DNA of 63,944 nt, filler included, from Intoshia linei (lineage: Eukaryota > Animalia > Orthonectida), in the NCBI GenBank assembly GCA_001642005.1. It is 8 parts of 8 records of this genome, joined end to end, with 100 filler letters (N's around TTAATTAATTAA, not from the genome) between each part and the next. Parts side by side here need not be neighbours in the genome. Positions count along the whole stretch, not along the records: positions 12,683 to 25,108 come from LWCA01001080.1; 7 more parts are not named here. The stretch is one strand, 5' to 3'. Shown in pieces: positions 12,683 to 25,108 of this stretch (positions within the stretch are counted from its first letter, which is position 1; each line of letters starts with the position of its first letter). The position numbers and the translations under genes were made by a program. The notes below the pieces were generated by a model, which did no database searches, was not told the origin of the DNA, and was given only the letters and a program-made list of their open reading frames with translations.

Positions 12683-14103
12683 AAAATAAAAAAATAACGC
12701 ACTTACAGTAAATATTCGTAAAGATATAATGATTTAAAATAAAGTTACAATAAAAACGACATTACTTATGAAACGACCTAATATATTGGCAACCCTCACA
12801 ATAATTTGGTAACAGATATAATATTCAAATTTTCCTTCAAAATCTGTCATGAAATTACTCTTATAAATGGTCATATCTGCTAAATTATATGCAATTCATA
12901 TATGCATTGAATAAAATTTAAATATAATTATCGAAAAATGTGCAATTAAGAATTTTATCATGAAAAAAAATTTCCCGAATATATTGTGAAAGATTAATTA
13001 AACTATTGCTTCTTAAAAATGACTTAAAAGTTACTTTAACAAAAAATATTTAATAAATTTTAGTATATTATGGAATCTTTGTATTGACCATATTCATCGC
13101 AAACATGACTTTATTTTTGCAAACATGATTAACAAGATCGTGAATGTCTTGTATTTGAATGAATTTATTATATTGTAAATAACCAGAATTTGATAAATTA
13201 AATCGTTAATAAAATCCAAAAAAATTGAGCTAGAAACAAATTTAAACAATTAAACTGTATAAATAAACATGGAGAACAGTATTATAAAAGCGGTAATACG
13301 TTTAAAAGCTCAAACGCCGATTTCTGGTAAAATAAAGTTCAGTTTTAATTTCTTAATAATATTTATACAGTGATATTTAAAATGACAAACGCAACTCGAA
13401 TAGATAGCGTTAAATATTTTTGGTTGCGAATTAGTTTTTCTATATTAAAATTACACACTTTTAGTGCTAATTGCCTTTGATTTTTTGATGAGTGTGACAC
13501 TCTACACTACAGTGCAGCCAAAAGCATCACAATTTTTGTGGATATGTATTATAATTTTGTAAATAATGTTTTTATATTGATTAATTCTGGTGGTTAATTT
13601 CGCCACTGTTTAAGTTTAATATACACTATTTTATAAGTAGTTTTTTGGAGTTTGAAAATTTACAGTACATGGTCTTTTGTTATAAAAGATTTCATATTTT
13701 CGCGTATTTTAATGTTGCATTACATAAAAATTTACTTTTTTATGACGCCGGTTAAGATTATATGTTAATTTGTAATTTTTTTTTGTAAATAGTCGTTGTT
13801 GTAAAAGATTTTGTTAAAATTATTTTATATATACTAATTCTTTTTTACCAAACTTTTAAAGGGTTTTCAAGATTTTTTTTACCAAACTTTCAAGGGGAGT
13901 TTTTAAGATTTTTTACCTTGATAAGCAGTGAATTTCATGGTATTTAAAATCATATTTTAAACTTAGAAAATATACAATATGAAATGTTAACAAAATGTAA
14001 ATGAACCATTCTCCAGCAAATAAAACAAATATTTCAATTTAATTTAATTTAAATTTAATTAATATCCTAGACTCATACTTATAGATAGACTTAAAATTCT
14101 CGT

Positions 14104-17100
14104 ATGACAGCGTGCAACATGGTTATTTGCACTATTTTACTATTTTGTCAACATTGGCGTAGTTATGGTGCATTCCGTTTGAGAATGTATTTTAAAATAT
14201 AGTATATTTTATTTATTTATGTCATAATATCTTAATAGAGCCTTATTATTAATTGTTCTATAATAATTTTGTAATATGCTGAACATATATGAATCAAACT
14301 AACAAACCACGTAAAAAAAACATGGTAGCATATAATTTAAATTTATGGTTTTTTTAAATTATGACAGAGAATGGCTCAAATACAATAAATATATAAATGA
14401 AATGATTAAAATGATGAAAAACAATTATAATACATATGTGCGTAATAATAATTTCTTATCCTTAACTATTTAGATAGTAATATTAATAAAATAACTTGTG
14501 TTATTGTGTAATTAATTTTGATTTTATTTTAGTTTGTAAATTATTTAAATACATTAATAAATAATATTACCAAATTGTATTACCAATATGATTCACCGAT
14601 TTGATAAAATTTGTACATTTATATTAATTTAATAATGATTATAATAAATATAGATTGTAAAATTATTTTAATATCATTAAAAAATTATCACGTGTGCCAT
14701 AGAAAGGAACGTGATGATTTTTATATTTTATAACGTGAAATGTTTCAGAGTATTAATTTAAATGGACCATAACTTTGAAAATGATGTGAAACCTATTTCA
14801 AATAAACAAATATACCTGTTTTATAATAATTAATTAGCGGCAAAATTTTGGGGTCGTTTATTTTTCATATTACCGCAGAAATTTTGCTTCCATTTTGATT
14901 CCTTACTCATTTCAATCATTTAATCATTAATTAAATTACAGTTAATGCATTGATATTATTACTTTATTGGATTTATATGGTTTTATATACAGGTCGCCAA
15001 AATAATTTTTTTGTTAACTTAAAATAATTTGCCAATCTACTTAATTTTTACTTTTGTTAATAAATGAATATGAAAATAATTGATATCTTTTTATAGCAAG
15101 TAATACCAATTTGATTGAAATTATATTCCCATATATTATTAAATAATTTAAAATTACATTAACTTAACAATTTTATTTCTATATTTCAGTTTGTAATTAA
15201 AATATATCATTCACAAAAATTGATTGCAATTAGCATTTCAGAAAATTATATATACATTTATTTTGAATTTAGATGGTAATATCTATTAATTTTTAAAATA
15301 CAATTATAGTCAGACCTATGTATCATTAAAATTAACCTTAAAGTTATTGAGGTGGTCATTGTATCGCAAATGGGAATCATGGTAGAGCTAAACCCCACCA
15401 GGGACCTACAGATAATCTATGGAAGTTTTATTATAGATTTTTCGATTTCAACATATTGATAACTTTTATGCGAATCGGAATTTTTTTGCTTGTTTTTGGG
15501 TCGGTTTTACACGGTTATATTTTATTAATGACTTCATCAAACATTTCAACTGAAATGTGAAAGAAATGACTTATATTGAAAAATATTTCATTAATGAGAT
15601 ATAAAAATAATATTAAACTTATTAGAAAAAATGAGTATTTTTATGTTTTTATAAATGATCGATTAAGTTGAATTTTTTTACTAACATTGGAAATAAGTAA
15701 AAAGAAAATATTAGATCTACTAATAAATTATGTCACTTTTAAATCCAATTTTAGTGAAGACTCCATATAATCACACTTTATATAAGAACATATATAGCAG
15801 ATGGGTCAAAGGATGGTCCGCGGGCCGCATGCGGCCCGTTACATCAAATTGAGGGGTCCGCGAAATTTTTTAGTAATATATTTTGAAAAACATTGATTTA
15901 CAGAAATATCATAATTACCACATTACCAAGCATTAATTTAAATTTTTTAAAAATAATTCTGTATTTGTGCAGTAATTATTCTCAACTTCTTACTTTTTGT
16001 ACATCACCATAATAATTCTAACTTTTTGAACCTTTTGTACCATTATCCTATACTTATATAAAGTTGAGATTAAAAGTTTAGGAACTTATTTTAAAGTTTA
16101 AGAATTTTAAGGTTGTCTTTAAGTTTGGTTCAAAAAAATTTCCTTAAAACCCTCTCCAAATTTAATTAAAAAAATGTCTAAAGAAACCCATAAAGTTGAT
16201 TCAAAAAAATTTTCTAAAACCCAAAAATAAAATGTAAATGAAAATTTTACACATTCTATACGAAATATACATAATATTCAATAATATACATAATAATGTA
16301 TATATAACGTAGAAGGTATATAATTTAATGTTAAATGTATGAATAATAAAAAATTTTTGACGGGTTCGACGCGTATGAATTGAAATATTTTATGTATGGT
16401 ATATATAAATATAATATTATATAATAATATATTTTATTTTAACGAAGATTGTAAAATTCTATTAATAATATTAATATACTTTTAATTTTAACGTTATAAA
16501 TAATATATTTATTATGAAACATTTAGTAAAAGGTTTTTTTACATAAAAAATAAAATGGAATGATAATATTTTATACATTAATTATAAGGCAAGGTTTTTC
16601 ACAATCCCACAACACTTTATTGGAATGATCGCCGTATGAAATACTGCTGATTAAAATGTGAAGTAAATTGAATTAGTGGATTCGAAATTACATTAATTTT
16701 TTTTACTGTTTCAGTTATATTTAAATATCATGGACACTACCAACTAAAAAATACCAGTCTTACAAAAATCAATCAGCCATTTTGCACTCAAAATTTTAAG
16801 AGCGATTTTGGAGAAATCTAGAAAGTTTATAAAGTGATACGAATGTATTAATTTTATTTATATTTTTCACAACTTTATTTTTTATTTTTTCGCGACTTGT
16901 GAATTATTAATTGTAAATTGTATCTTGAAAAACTTTGTTGTATATTGAAATATATAAAAATTTAATAAATTTAATTATAATTCAACTATAGCTGGTAATA
17001 TTACAGATGAGTAATTATATTAATTACAACATTAAGGAGGTAAAATACATTGTAGTATTATTAGAGTATTGTAATATTATGAATACCATAAATAAAGTGG

Positions 17101-20100
17101 TTTCTGTGAAATGTGTGTTATATGAATGTCTCACGAATAATATTTCATGTACTTTCCGCTTTGTTCAGTAATTTTCCTTTTTCATATACATATTGCACAA
17201 AATATTGCATTATGAATATCAATTGTAATAACTGGTTCTATGGAATTATTATGGAACAGAAATTACTTATTAATATTATAATTATTATTAATTATTATTA
17301 TTAATATGATCAATTGAAATATTATTAAATAAAACAGTTATAATTAAAAAATGATAATTTTATATTTTTACGTAAATAGTCATAAATTTAAAAGCATATT
17401 AAAAAGATAGTAAATAATTTAAATTGAAAGCAAATTATACTATAAAATGAAATTAAATAAAAAAATTAAATATTATTGACAGCAAGTAATCATAATTTGA
17501 TAAAATAGTTGTTTTTTAGTACATTAGCTGTCACTCCATTAGTTGGTTAATATTTAATTTACTGGATATATTGATACTTTTCTTATTTATTTATCAAAGT
17601 AAATTTTCCCTAAATCGTAAAATATTACATTAGCGTTAATTTTAAATATTAAGTTAAGTTGTATATTTGAATTGTTTTTAATTCGGATTCCCCTACCAGT
17701 AGCAGCGATCTACACATGTAAACACATGAAATCTCATACAGTTTTAACGAAATTTCATTTTATCATTTTTATAATAGCAAGTTATGTACGAACAAACCAA
17801 AGGATGTTTTAGTTGATTTGATAAAATTTGATGCCTTATTACATTATTTTTGAAATATATATGGATTTATTAATTTACTAATTGAGGATGGCATATATTA
17901 TACAATATACGTGTAGTAAATACAATTTAATAGATGGTAAATATTAAAAAAATATATTCATAATTTTAATTTAATAGCCCGTAAAATACATATATTTTAT
18001 TTTATAAATATAATCAATAAAAAATATATTAAAATTTTAGTTTGTAATTGATTTGAATTAAATTTTTATACAGTCTCACCTCCGTTTGAGCACCTTTTTT
18101 GCAAAGTGCCTCAAAATTACAGGTTTTATTATTTAGTAAATTGTCTAATTTTTGATTAACATGTAAATACATGCATTAATATTAAATAATTATATATGTA
18201 ATGATATGTATAATGTTATATACTATTTGTTGGTATTACAGTCGAACCCGATATAGGCTGGTATTTTCAGATAAATGCATAAATAAAATTTTTAATAAAA
18301 AAAATTCTGACAAATAATTAAATTAATCCTGAAATTAAATATATTAATATTATTGTAATTACAATTATGTATACTTAATTTTTTGACATAATTAAATAAA
18401 TTAAATTATTTTCTAATCTAGAAGATATATAACCAAAGGTAGTTACAATAGCGATACATTAAGCGGTCCACTTTTCGAAAAAAATTGTTGCTACTGTATG
18501 TAGAAATCAAGGACGTCAGAGGAGGCCAGCGAGGCCGAGCCTCCACTGAGTAAATTGATATTGAAAATGCAAACTTTTCTTAAAAAACAATTACATTTTT
18601 TACTTTAACATTTTAAAAATTACAATTATTATGAATTTAATTCAATACTAAGTTTAGCATTTTAAATAAATTATATTTTTTTTATTTTTAATAATAATAA
18701 TAATATTTATGTATTTTTAATAATAATAAGTTTTTTTTTGGATGGTTTTTTCTTTCTCTTGTCTTATTTACATTTCTATAATTTTTATGTAATTTTTTTG
18801 ATAATAATCCAACAACAGTGACATAGTATGCTTGAAATAATAAATAAATATAGCTTAAATTATTATTATATTATATTAAATTGATTTAATTAGATTTACA
18901 AAATGTTTAACCAAACAGTCGATAATTTCATATATATTGTTATTTTTGTTATAAATACTATAAAATCAACATAATACAGAAAAACTCCTCAAAATGCGAG
19001 TATACACTATAGCGAGGTTTGCCCGAACGGGGTCGAACTGTGAAATGAAAATATAATAAAAAATTTAAAAACCAAGCTGGTAATATTAAATTAGAAATAA
19101 TCTCAAATATACAATGCATTTTATAAAAATTTACATTTATATACCCATCAATATACTACATATAAATATACTTGTATAATGTATAATAATATTTTTATTA
19201 ATTTTAGCACGTAAATATTATTAAATGAATACTACATGTACTATGCAGTGGCAGGTCTAAAATTTTCAGCCAGGGGGGGGGGAGAAATAATTATTAGGGG
19301 ACTAAACTCATATTATGTATTTAAGTTTCAATTTTTATATTATGTTTATTAATATATGTCTATATATAATAATTTATATTTTTTTTCTAGTTTTCATTAT
19401 ACTACCTTTTCAACAACTGCATCAAAATCACAATTTTCGGCAAGTTCTTTTTCTGTTATCAACAACGTTAAGTAGGATAATTTAACTTAAACTGCTGTTA
19501 AACTCCGATAACAAATTAATATACATAAAACGTTAAAGAATCATAGTTCAATAAAAGTAATATAGTTTAATTTAATGGGCCTAGAAAATTTTTTTAATTT
19601 TACACAATGGTAATATACAAATAAAAATATTTTAGAGACACATTTGTCACACCAAGGGCCCCGCCCCCTTGCACCACCTAGATCCGCTACTGGTACTTAA
19701 TATGTATGTATTATTAGTATTTATTGATATGTTTAAAATCATTTTTTATACCTGTTAGTTTATCTGTTTTAGTGAGTATTGAAATACATTTATTTATATT
19801 TTATTTATTATTACTATATATAAGTAATACATTTTTATAATATAAATTTTAATAATTTTTAAATTTATTAGATTGTAAATACATTTTTTAATTATATAAA
19901 TGTTAATCTGAAATTCAGATCGTAAATTTTTTAATTGAAATGAATTGTATTATTATCTTTAGACATTTAATTTTATGAGAAAATTATTTAGAATTATGAT
20001 CATTTATTAGACAAAATGACATGGTTTAAATGATTGTGTATTTTAATTAGAATGTAAATTATAACTCAAAAATATTAAATGTATAATGTACATTATTTAT

Positions 20101-23100
20101 ACATTATTCAAAAGTCTATACATTTACGATAGTGCGTAAACCAAAAATTATTAAATTCATCATGAAAAATACTGTATTTGATTAAAATTTTATTATAGAC
20201 GGTATAAACAAATCTAGTTTCTTTATAAATCAAATACATGTAGTATACATTTTATAATTACTAAAATTTTACAGCTTGTATTTAAATTTCATTTCATTTT
20301 TTTAATTTCATGGAAATTATTTTAATTATATAAATTAGATAGTAAATACAAACATGAAATAATATTACATGTATATAATATATATACTATTATACTAATT
20401 ACAGGATGTAATTGAATACATTAAATAACTATACAAAAATTTAAATATACTTTAATAAAATTTCATCAAAATAGTACGTATTGTTCAAGATTATATTTTT
20501 TATTTTTTATAACTTTTCTAATATATATTTTAAAAATAATAGAAGGTATATCATCAATACATTGCGATGCCGTGTCAAGATGGAACTGTCTAGATTATTT
20601 TAATTATCAAATTAAAGCGTGAATTGCCTTATTAATCATTGCATTTTATTGTATATGTATATGAAGGTGTGGGTCATTAAAGTTGGGTATTTAAGTCAAT
20701 TAATGAAAATGTAACATTTAACGATATTCAGACGAGTTCCGATGCAATAAGACAATTGATGTACGTTAATGTAATTAAATTTAAAATTATTCCATTTAGC
20801 GAGTAATATTTATTATTTTAATTATCAAATTAAAGCGTGAATTGCCTTATTAATCATTGCATTGTATTGTATATGTATATGAAGGTGTGGGTCATTAAAG
20901 TTGGGTATTTAAGTCAATTAATGAAAATGTAACATTTAACGATATTCAGACGAGTTCCGATGCAATAAGACAATTGATGTACGTTAATGTAATTAAATTT
21001 AAAATTATTCCATTTAGCGAGTAATATTTATTATTTTAATGTTACCATTCGTGCATTTACAATTACATTTTAACGATTAAAAATATTGATTTATTTATTT
21101 CATTTAGCTGGTAATTTGAATATTGTATTAAACTGATTTATAATAATGGTTCTAAAATAATATTATTTATTTCTATTTATTATCTATTTATTATAAATAA
21201 TTGATAATTCATCAGCTCGTATGTTCCATTGTTTCAATAATATTAAATATATTTTAATTACATTCAATCCCAGGACTGATCTCACAAATATTACAAATTA
21301 TATAAAACTTATTATTAGAGTTTATTAGTATTTTGTCAAGGTTTAATTTTTAGTATTTTTTTGAGTATTTTAAAAAAAATTTATATGGTTTTTTGGGGTA
21401 TTTTTCTTATTTGGTATTGTGACGTCATTTATGGGAATGACTAGTTTAAATATAAATTAAATATGTTTATAGATAAAAGTAATTTAATTAACAATTTGTA
21501 AACTCTTATTGTATGTGTACATTAATTTACATTAATTAATAATAAATAAAATTAAAAATAATTACGAACCCATGAAATTTTTTAATGTACCTTTTAAAAT
21601 GTAATTTTTATGAAAAGAGAATAAAATGCCAAACAGGTTTATAAATATGATGAAAACGTTAGAATCAGAGAAGGTTATGTACATAATATATATTCTGATA
21701 TATATTATTATAATAATATGTATTTTCTAAAATAATAAAAATGACAATAAAAAAAGCAAAAATTTTCAAATTAAATTTTATAATTTGACGAATAATATAA
21801 TAATATTTTTTGTACGTTTCCATGATAACTTGTTTAATTTTTATTCAAAAAAACGGTAAATTGAACACTAATACTGGTACAGCCTGCAGCATCAGGTATG
21901 AAGATAATTACATATAGTATGTTAATTTTAACGTTTATACATATAGAACGTAAACTTTTATATTAATACTTTTTGTATTAAAATTAGTGTTATACATTAT
22001 ATATTAATGTCAATTCCTAATGTGGTTAACATGTAGCAATTTATATTTAAAAATAACTAATCCAAAATAAAATTTAAAATTACAAATTTATTGATTTTGA
22101 GAATAGATGGTATAAAACTTTTATATTTTATTATTTGTATTTAAATTTATAAATATAGCTGGTTCGTGATTTAAATATTTAAGTCAAATTTACTTTAAAA
22201 CTTAATTTGTATAATAATATAAAAATTAGAATGTATGCATTTTATTTTAACCAATTTAAAATATATTATTGTATTTTTAATATATATATTTTCAACAATA
22301 CCATAAACATGTAGTAGGTAATAATTATACATCACCTACTTATATTATTATATTGCATTTATAATTGAAATTGAAATATAAAATTTAGTTCGTAATCAAT
22401 TTAAAATATATGATTTAACACTTTTCAAAAGGAACTTAATGTAAACATGGGGCCTTTGGTTTCGATTACGGAACATGGGATCCAAATTGAACGATTTAGT
22501 TAATTTTATAAAAATATAGTTGGTATATTATATTCACATGTACATATGTATATGTTTATGTCAATATATAACCATATTAATGTATCGTGTACGATATCCT
22601 ACTAAATATGTAAATTTATAGCCGGTAAATGTTTATCAATATATCATTTTCAATATTTTAATAATATTAATATTAATTAAATTATTGTATCGGTTAACCC
22701 ATTTTAATTATTAAAATATAAAATGTTATGTTATATATTTTATATTACTTTTTAAAATGATTAGCTTGTAAAATAAAAAATATTAAATATAATTGTAATT
22801 GTATCCTTAAATCGTAAAATTATTAAATATCTAAAATAAAACAGATTGTAATACCCATATAAATACATACATTGATGAAAAATCACTTATAAACTCAATT
22901 ATAATAGTGAGTAAATTTTAAAACTTTATTATTTTAACATGTAAATAAAATAATATAATATTATAAAAAAATTTAAAAATAATGTGATTGAAATCAGATT
23001 ATTATCATTATAAAATTATTACTTAATTTTTTTAGTTGGTAATTTTTTAATATAAATAAATATAAACTATCATAGTGATTAATATGGTTAAAAAATCTTC

Positions 23101-24337
23101 CCACTTTTATTATACTTGCTGTATCTTAATTAATACATTCAAATATAGCATGTAAAAAAAATTTAATTTTTTTTAATTATTTTGTTTATAATGTTTTTCA
23201 TGTTTCAGTGAGTAAAGTTAACTGAAATCTATATTCACATTTTAAATAAATTTTCATTGAAAATCTAATTTTACCTATCTAGATGGTGATATATTGTTAT
23301 ATAAATTATATACAAATTTATATGTACGTGAAATGTATACATTCCACGGGAAAGTCGTAGAATGTGTAAAATTTTCATTTATATTTTAATTTTAGTTTGA
23401 TTTTGCGTTTTTTAGAAATTTTTTTTTGAACCAAACTTTCAACAGGGGTTTCTAAAAAATTTTTATTTAAATCAAACTTTAAGGTGGTTTTTAGGAATTT
23501 TTTTAGAACCAACTTTCAATATGGGTTTTTAACAAAATTTTTTTTAAACCAAACTTTAAGAGGGGTTATAGGAATTTTTTTTTGAACCATACTTTCAAGG
23601 AGGTTTTTAAGATTTTTTTTGAACCAACTTTCAACAGGGGTTTCTAAGTAATTTTTTTTGAATCAAACTTGAAACAACCACCTTGAAAGTATGGTTCAAA
23701 AAAAATTTCTAAAACCAAAATTAAAATATATAAATGAAAATTTTACAAATTCTACGACTTTCCTATAGAATGTGTACATTTCAGTTTTACACATTTTATA
23801 CGACATATCTATATGGTTGTTGAAGGTTGATCAAAATGTATTATTTTCATAAGATTTAGTAAATATAAAATATCATTTTCTTCATAATTTTTAATTGTTC
23901 AATATTGTTCAAATCCATGCAAATTATAAACTGACGGTAATATATACAATGTATATTATACATGTATGTTTATTATTAATACTTGTGGTAACATTTAAAA
24001 TTTGGTAGCATATCTATACTTTCCAACTACATACATTTATTTAGTAGAAAACTCCGATGGTGTTAATATTTAATTTTTAAATGTAGAAAGTAATTTTATA
24101 ATTTTAAATATATTGATTCATATTGCATGATATCATTATAATAAACCTTTTACTTTGTTTTTTTAGGATATATTACAATCATATATTTAATTGCCGATTA
24201 GCTAGTAAAATTCACAAGTTTTTATTAAATTTTTTTATTATTATTCTAATTGTTTCTAATTTATTATAGTTCCAAGACGTAACATATTGAAACTTATTAT
24301 TTAGAAATATAATTTATTAAATATATAATTGTAGTAC
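14104..24337 (+). CDS. Putative micro-exon gene: two ordinary exons (14104-14186, 14368-14441), then about 50 three-nt exons plus a 6-nt (21473-21478) and a 9-nt (24270-24278) exon, all phase 1; probably secreted; 3' end not found
   Basis: AG|NNN|GT units (mostly TAG/CAG acceptors, GTA-type donors) at exon starts 14474,14533,14654,15097,15190,15273,16313,16992,17037,17483,17543,17778,17934,17978,18041,19077,19208,19773,19872,19919,20051,20133,20199,20275,20339,20405,20475,20543,20800,21018,21108,21216,21947,22107,22159,22230,22315,22389,22520,22622,22765,22845,22908,23036,23149,23209,23283,24087,24202,24335. Joined: MTACNMVICTILLFCQHWRSYGAFRLRIEWLKYNKYINEMIKMMKNNYNTYV-HIYSIYEAGAIANALSALNYQLHAYRLQATTAHKKHAELVLAAYLIALNETIPRL... 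Confidence 0.75.
19246..19692. mobile_element. hAT-type MITE inside the micro-exon gene
   Basis: TIRs cagtggcaggtcta / tagatccgctactg; partial flanking direct repeat gtact. Confidence 0.6.
20594..21040 (+). repeat. 218-bp tandem duplication containing the CGA micro-exon
   Basis: Two nearly identical copies with period 218 (CGA at 20800 and 21018); at least one substitution (gcatttta / gcattgta). Confidence 0.9.
23328..23783. mobile_element. Foldback/MITE element with long TIRs and an internal ~40-bp minisatellite
   Basis: About 75-bp inverted arms (tgaaatgtatacattcc...tagaatgtgtacatttca) around repeats of ttttttgaaccaaactttcaa-ggggttt. Fragments also at about 13840-13915 and 16060-16265. 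Confidence 0.7.
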
Positions 24338-24440
24338 GTAATCTTTTTATTTATAGCGTATTCATTATACAAAATGTTTAATTATGACAATGACCTTAAC
24401 ATGTTTGTATCCTGTTTTAAATGTGGAAATGTCTAAATTA

Positions 24441-25108
24441 CACAGTACAACATTTTTCGAAAAATTTCAAAATAGATTTTTCTAACCTATATCGTTTTGT
24501 AGCTGGTATTCTTGTGATTCGAATAGTGTGGGTCACTTTATCAAGTCAGATCGACGTTTCGAGATATAATAGGAATAAAATACCATAATTACAAGAAAGT
24601 TATATTGATTGTGATCTAAAACCCACTATTCGACCTATAAAAAAGTTATGGATTCAACCAAAAATTTGGCTTGTGGCAATATACGTATGTATCTACCATA
24701 GAGAGAAAAAAATTAACAAAATTTAAAGTATTTTAGAATTTAGCCTGTGGCATTCCTCTTATATCTTTAGAAAAATTAGCATTTTTGAATAAATTTCTAC
24801 TTTCATGAGTGATATACATCCAAGAGTCTACTTTTTATTCTAACTTTACGACATACTTAAATGACCTCCATGCATTTAATTCATCAGGACATAGACTGTT
24901 TTCAAATGTTTTAGACATAAAAAGTTGTTTGATTTCTGGTCCATTTAATACTCCTGCCAACAATTTCATTTTCGATAAATGTGGCAGAGCACTTGTTAAA
25001 GTAATACGTGGTTGAGAAGGGTCGAGAGATCTCTTTCTTAAACATTTTAAAAACTGAGCATAATCCGATTTTTAAGTGTAATGGAGGTAACAATATCCTA
25101 TCAAATTT
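24441..25108 (-). mobile_element. Degenerate DNA-transposon transposase remnant, probably CMC/Chapaev3-like
   Basis: LPPLHLKIGL motif followed by a frameshifted MKLLAGVLNGPEIKQLL...NAWRSFKYVV segment; CAC-type terminus at 24441. Superfamily assignment is from recall. Confidence 0.55.

Follow-up and report, generated by a model that had tools for sequence, protein, structure and literature searches.

An array of paired splice signals on LWCA01001080.1

In this work, we analysed DNA of the orthonectid Intoshia linei (assembly GCA_001642005.1), presented as a window of 63,944 nucleotides joined from eight records, and concentrated on the piece at positions 12683-25108, which comes from LWCA01001080.1 and has a G+C content of 21.6%. 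Neither strand of this piece contains a long open reading frame, and no ordinary exons were found across its 12.4 kb. Its plus strand carries a long series of splice acceptor and donor motifs set exactly three bases apart, which suggests that the locus is an apparently undescribed, extreme micro-exon gene. An original prediction, made by reading the DNA and counting by hand, had proposed that 52 such micro-exons are spliced together and translated with phase-1 introns into a helical protein rich in alanine and leucine.

We counted AG-N(k)-GTA for k = 0-12 on both strands of the piece. Only k = 3 is enriched, with 50 matches on the plus strand and 6 on the minus strand, other spacings giving 3-10 each; spacing 0, at which AG abuts GT, is unenriched (7 plus, 6 minus). 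The 56 AG-NNN-GTA sites of both strands compare with 11.9 +/- 3.5 (maximum 21) in 100 dinucleotide-preserving shuffles, and they span 14184-24505, leaving the first 1.5 kb and the last 0.6 kb of the piece free of them. Counts by class were as follows:

YAG-NNN-GTA: 45 on the plus strand, 3 on the minus strand, about 15-fold
RAG-NNN-GTA: 5 on the plus strand, 3 on the minus strand
YAG-NNN-GT[C/G/T]: 10 on the plus strand, 6 on the minus strand

As the whole excess lies in the YAG-NNN-GTA class, we adopted this motif as an exon rule blind to coding, which yields a blind set of 45 plus-strand sites, about 3 of them expected as chance matches. The RAG-NNN-GTA sites (14184, 16448, 17037, 17407 and 19077) and the YAG-NNN-GT[C/G/T] sites occur at opposite-strand frequency, and we regarded them as chance matches. 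The features of the array are:

14474..24505, plus strand: chain of 45 three-base exons, YAG-NNN-GTA, each exon running from its start to start + 2
Exon starts 1-15: 14474, 14533, 14654, 15097, 15190, 15273, 16313, 16992, 17483, 17934, 17978, 18041, 19208, 19773, 19872
Exon starts 16-30: 19919, 20051, 20133, 20199, 20275, 20339, 20405, 20475, 20543, 20800, 21018, 21108, 21216, 21947, 22107
Exon starts 31-45: 22230, 22315, 22389, 22520, 22622, 22765, 22845, 22908, 23036, 23149, 23209, 24087, 24202, 24335, 24503
19773..21218, plus strand: densest run, with 15 three-base exons

Splice-site features, exon length and introns

The splice-signal array is real beyond reasonable doubt. A pyrimidine occupies position -3 in 45 of the 50 plus-strand AG-NNN-GTA sites, and donor position +4 is A (38 sites) or T (12 sites) and never G or C, with position +5 likewise restricted to A and T. 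Three further features lie outside the search rule altogether: the nearest upstream AG is a median 45 nt away for chain acceptors and 13 nt away for other AGs, as in an AG-exclusion zone; a branch-point-like YTRAY stands 8-30 nt upstream of 56% of the sites, compared with 36% of random positions (P=0.006); and G falls to 4.7% across the last 20 nt before the acceptors. The plus strand also shows an excess of G over C (+128) and of T over A (+218), the usual direction for a sense strand.

When good acceptors were paired with good donors up to 120 nt apart, an exon length of 3 gave 42 pairs and every other length from 1 to 120 gave 1-4, so the exons appear to be uniformly 3 nt long, with no larger ones hidden among them; nor did the same pairing make any larger in-phase exon stand out inside the long introns. 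The first exon base is G in just 2 of the 50 sites, although G is common after an acceptor AG in ordinary exons; candidate causes are avoidance of a GT directly after AG and a product with little Gly, Arg and Cys.

The intervals between exons have a median of 107 nt, with 31 of 44 under 150 nt, most between 56 and 165 nt, and a size mode at 60-80 nt; from 20133 to 20545 they measure 79, 63, 73, 61, 63, 67 and 65 nt. Minimal spliceosomal introns typically fall in a size class as narrow as this. With the exception of one exact duplicate, the introns are dissimilar to one another in sequence, and an origin of the motif as the core of a decayed tandem repeat was rejected on that ground.

Codon-level signal across exon junctions

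Joining the 45 triplets in order gives 4, 3 and 0 stop codons in the three frames, the open frame being the one in which each codon is the last base of one exon followed by the first two of the next. The original prediction had rested its codon-level argument on this frame. Its 52 micro-exons are exactly what the plain rule YAG-NNN-GT returns for 14474-24337, but its manual counts of 17 C-starting exons, 17 G-ending exons and 12 G-ending exons followed by a C-starting one were too high, these sites giving 16, 15 and 10. Its statement that no junction creates a stop is true of the GTA-donor exons and fails for the plain-rule set, in which TAA arises at three junctions. Each of these involves a weak GTT or GTG donor at a site that is probably no exon; two lie in the arms of a transposon-like insertion described below and one would need a 26-nt intron.

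The central claim, a dependence between neighbouring exons across their introns, withstood the shuffling of exon order that had been proposed for it, here on the blind set, with a corrected P of about 0.01. A C-starting exon, and thus a GCN alanine codon, follows 9 of the 12 G-ending exons, with only 15 of the 45 exons starting with C (permutation mean 4.25, P=0.0014; Fisher P=0.0009). The result holds when one copy of a duplicated exon is dropped (P 0.00085) and when shuffles are confined to blocks of 5-15 exons (P=0.002-0.003), and taking the maximum z across all 16 base pairs, which corrects for a pair chosen post hoc, gives P=0.009. At lags -4 to +4 the G-to-C count is 5, 3, 5, 2, 4, 9, 4, 5 and 4, so that the excess is confined to lag +1, that is, to true neighbours.

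Leucine content and hydropathy agree with this. The open frame encodes 9 Ala (4.25 expected) and 8 Leu (4.4 expected) among 44 residues, in line with the predicted Ala/Leu-rich product, while Asp, Val, Pro and Ser are low; its mean hydropathy exceeds that of shuffles (P=0.011, stops ignored), against P=0.13 for the neighbouring frame. Joining each exon to the next but one creates 5 stop codons, so that skipping one exon would introduce a stop at 5 junctions; this speaks against exons being skipped freely in any combination.

Two compositional arguments carried less. The A/T richness of the middle, or wobble, base (80%) is uninformative beside a background of 78%. The last base is indeed rich in G+C (49% versus 21.6%, P=6.5e-5), as had been noted, but G at this position is also donor consensus, which confounds its use as codon evidence.

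The usual consensus across a ligated junction is G followed by G or by A, and we know of no splicing-level reason for a preference for G followed by C. Selection on GCN codons in a joined product would therefore be the simplest reading. The codon-level signal is real in kind and restricted to true neighbours, and reaches significance near the 1% level once corrected; it is thinner than first claimed.

Proposed gene model and terminal exons

Read as a gene, 14.3-24.6 kb on the plus strand would contain about 42-45 internal exons of exactly three bases, each between YAG and GTA(A/T), with transposon insertions held in the long introns. Three nucleotides cannot accommodate acceptor- and donor-binding factors together, so the introns would have to be removed one after another. 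Each donor would become usable only once the upstream intron is gone, or the reverse, and each step would add one triplet, in a form of recursive splicing whose exon measures 3 nt instead of 0 nt. With phase-1 introns (exon phase 2 in general feature format, GFF), codon position 1 would come from the last base of an exon, and positions 2 and 3 from the two bases that open the next. The chain would then yield about 44 residues, with Ala, Leu, Tyr and Ile prominent among them, probably continuing into a hydrophobic C-terminal tail from a normal terminal exon. The putative product may be small and either secreted or membrane-bound, like effectors of the micro-exon type. On the sequence evidence, we consider it on balance probable that the locus is a translated chain of 42-45 three-base exons, spliced stepwise and with phase-1 introns.

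Candidate ends for such a gene, both proposed terminal exons being of low confidence, are:

14345..14441, plus strand: candidate first coding exon, low confidence; ATG, 32 codons plus one base, and a GTAATA donor in the phase that the chain needs
13269-13326, plus strand: alternative first-exon candidate, not hydrophobic
24503..24588, plus strand: candidate terminal coding exon, low confidence; two bases plus 27 codons, TAA at 24586-24588 and AATAAA at 24574-24579

Just 32 nt separate the donor of the first candidate from the exon at 14474, so that its splicing partner would need to be the exon at 14533; only 1.7% of plus-strand GTA sites have an ATG-started open frame of at least 32 codons in this phase. 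A start candidate at 14118, which is hydrophobic, was set aside, its only phase-1 donors falling below the donor score cut-off. At the other end, none of the 45 sites scores lower for micro-exon context than the YAG at 24503, which may be the acceptor of the terminal exon instead; the YAGs at 24446 and 24476 would lead in phase into the same open frame of 55 codons. With both candidate ends, the modelled product would have about 100 residues and a hydrophobic stretch running across the junction of chain and terminal exon.

Several observations weigh against a translated chain. The stop-free frame, which the original prediction took as support, is true but unconvincing by itself: shuffled exon orders average 1.8 stops in that frame and have none with a probability of 0.11 for the 45 sites (0.04-0.07 for looser sets of 48-50 sites), zero stops also occur at pseudo-junction lags -4, -1 and +3, and the chance that any one of the three frames is open is, by a rough estimate, 0.2. 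The adjacency signal is carried by about nine junctions, and the global mutual information linking the last base of an exon to the first base of its successor reaches P=0.06, five control pairings giving P 0.36-0.89. The two shortest introns are just 41 and 44 nt long. The candidate first exon lacks a hydrophobic N-terminus and any signal-peptide character. At least 27 open codons in the required phase follow 15% of all YAGs, so the terminal frame is not unusual, and the 55-residue flanking open frame had no phmmer match among 1.8 billion representative proteins. Finally, the papers reached by full-text searching for runs of 3-nt or single-codon exons describe isolated 3-nt cassette exons only and offer no precedent for 45 in series, which lowers the prior.

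Alternative explanations

Some of these points would fit real splice sites whose joined triplets are left untranslated, in a non-coding RNA or an untranslated region (UTR), with the alanine and leucine adjacency arising by chance. Such an origin would sit comfortably with a stop-free frame that is not significant alone, with the marginal global association, and with the want of a convincing start exon or signal peptide and of protein relatives for the flanking open frame. It leaves to coincidence, however, a G-to-C excess that survives correction and is specific to lag +1, and leucine and hydropathy shifts that occur in the same frame only, and frame-keeping 3-nt exons would have no obvious purpose in a non-coding RNA. 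A host gene for small RNAs is ruled out by Rfam and tRNA scans, which returned nothing above threshold, and most introns are too short to house one. We consider an untranslated product unlikely.

The sites could also be recursive stepping stones or decoys within one long intron, belonging to a larger gene with its real exons outside the piece, in which case the triplets would form no coding chain. Adjoining acceptors and donors are the hallmark of Drosophila ratchet points (bioRxiv 10.1101/006163; PMC8605326), and the absence of any ordinary exon from the 12.4-kb piece would be expected of such an intron. Ratchet points, however, have zero bases between AG and GT, the very spacing that is unenriched here, and with a first exon base G in only 2 of 50 sites no GT would be regenerated at the acceptor. 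Furthermore, the spacing of 60-130 nt is far denser than the subdivision of a long intron needs, about 1.8 kb and 0.6 kb at the two ends of the piece lie beyond the chain, and the codon signal at lag +1 would be left unexplained. Stepping-stone sites are, in our judgement, quite unlikely.

That the array has nothing to do with splicing, being a strand-specific DNA motif (protein-binding or a transposon target), a relic of diverged repeats or an assembly artefact, is highly improbable: short A/T-rich motifs are common at 21.6% G+C and an exact 218-nt duplicate could be an artefact, but the enrichment is confined to one strand and one spacing, acceptor and donor features extend past the motif into the flanks, the units are otherwise dissimilar and neighbours correlate at lag +1 only.

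Duplication and inserted elements

Two further features bear on how the proposed chain of three-base exons may have grown and acquired its long introns, which carry transposon-like insertions:

20594..21029, plus strand: exact tandem duplication, 218 nt x 2, 100% identity, with one three-base exon and its intron per copy (20800, 21018)
23329..23783, no strand assigned: insertion resembling a miniature inverted-repeat transposable element (MITE), inside an 875-nt intron, with 59-nt inverted arms that are 90% complementary and internal repeats of about 38 and about 77 nt

The duplication adds one in-frame codon, and is either a very recent unit duplication that illustrates one route of chain growth or an assembly artefact. 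The MITE-like insertion accounts for one long intron and for two false YAG-NNN-GTG sites (23361 and 23769). Fragments of the same family are seen at 16100-16260, in another long intron, and at 13839-13914, upstream of the chain; words taken from the element had no match in metagenome scans.

Other elements were noted along the piece. At 19247-19692, G+C-rich inverted ends lie about 450 nt apart in a 562-nt intron, with a G-run and a C-run at 19269-19282 and 19659-19672; the termini are of CAGT type by eye, and the whole resembles another small foldback transposon, an end similar to its own standing alone near 17700. Short G+C-rich islands with local palindromes at 15800-15865 and 18500-18550, in long A+T-rich introns, are probably transposon remnants. 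Beyond the chain, a stop-free fragment of 78 residues on the minus strand (24838-25071), followed by more broken frames, looks like a decayed transposase-type gene; it had no matches in Pfam or in a word-indexed protein search, and its protein-atlas neighbours are vague and unnamed, a few bearing RAG1-type zinc-domain labels at low shares. Exact-protein look-ups of open frames in the window likewise returned no match.

Comparison with known micro-exon systems

The closest points of comparison are the bicycle and megacycle genes of aphids, phylloxerans and scale insects (Korgaonkar et al. 2021, bioRxiv 10.1101/2020.10.28.359562; Stern and Han 2022, PMC9168663). Micro-exons number about 5-25 in bicycle genes, almost all of whose internal exons begin at codon position 2 (PMC9168663); the 2092 residues of megacycle are spread over 118 exons separated by long introns, at about 53 nt per exon. 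The locus described here would share with bicycle genes many unusually small internal exons (42-45 of 3 nt), internal exons starting at codon position 2, a frame that we infer from the sole stop-free one, and resistance to discovery by sequence similarity. The published structure-only bicycle classifier, calculated by hand, gives a linear score of about 51 and a probability of about 1 against a cutoff of 0.72, although this score is driven by the 43 phase-2 exons of a putative gene model and the classifier was trained on exons far larger than 3 nt. In contrast to bicycle and megacycle genes, the internal exons here would all measure exactly 3 nt, and the introns mostly about 60-165 nt. The peptide encoded by the chain has no cysteine, and hence no CYC motif, a motif also missing from some classifier-positive bicycle homologues (Stern and Han, PMC9168663), and no signal peptide was found in the best-scoring first-exon candidates. 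Membership in the bicycle genes is thus not established.

Schistosome micro-exon genes (MEGs) have exons of 3-81 bp, in multiples of three, between ordinary terminal exons, with introns of up to 5 kb, and encode small products that are often hydrophobic or disordered (PMC10526429). A coding region made mostly of short exons with lengths in multiples of three would be common to both systems. MEG exon sizes vary, however, with 3 bp as their lower limit, whereas all internal exons here would be 3 nt, and MEG introns are long, whereas the median here is 107 nt; MEGs are known from parasitic flatworms. Free skipping of exons is also described for MEGs, whereas a single skip here would often truncate the product, as the five stop junctions indicate.

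Drosophila ratchet points (bioRxiv 10.1101/006163; PMC8605326) resemble the array in that an acceptor adjoins a donor, implying stepwise re-splicing from a growing upstream exon; they differ in leaving nothing in the mRNA and in lying in very long introns, whereas here each step, set about 60-130 nt from the next, would leave 3 bases. That spliceosomes are able to include 3-nt exons is known from isolated micro-exons of RPS24 (PMC12207440), MAP4K5 (PMC8632122) and bee elav (PMC8553928), which are single, often regulated cassettes between normal exons, unlike the row of about 45 described here.

Implications

The wider proposal is that the whole internal coding region consists of about 45 consecutive 3-nt exons with obligatory stepwise splicing and every codon straddling an intron, and that it could be a first example of a hidden class of genes, perhaps an extreme bicycle-type effector; judged from the DNA, we regard this proposal as evenly poised between right and wrong. 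If the triplets are joined, this would be the most fragmented coding sequence that we found on record, with an intron in every codon. It would set a working lower limit for the size of serial exons and would require ordered, recursive-type splicing. The mature reads would share no alignable word with the genome, so standard RNA-seq alignment and gene prediction would miss such genes, and whole families could be unannotated. The intron phase common to bicycle genes points to a testable evolutionary link with rapidly evolving secreted effectors, and the exact duplicate of an exon with its intron suggests a simple way in which such genes may gain residues singly.

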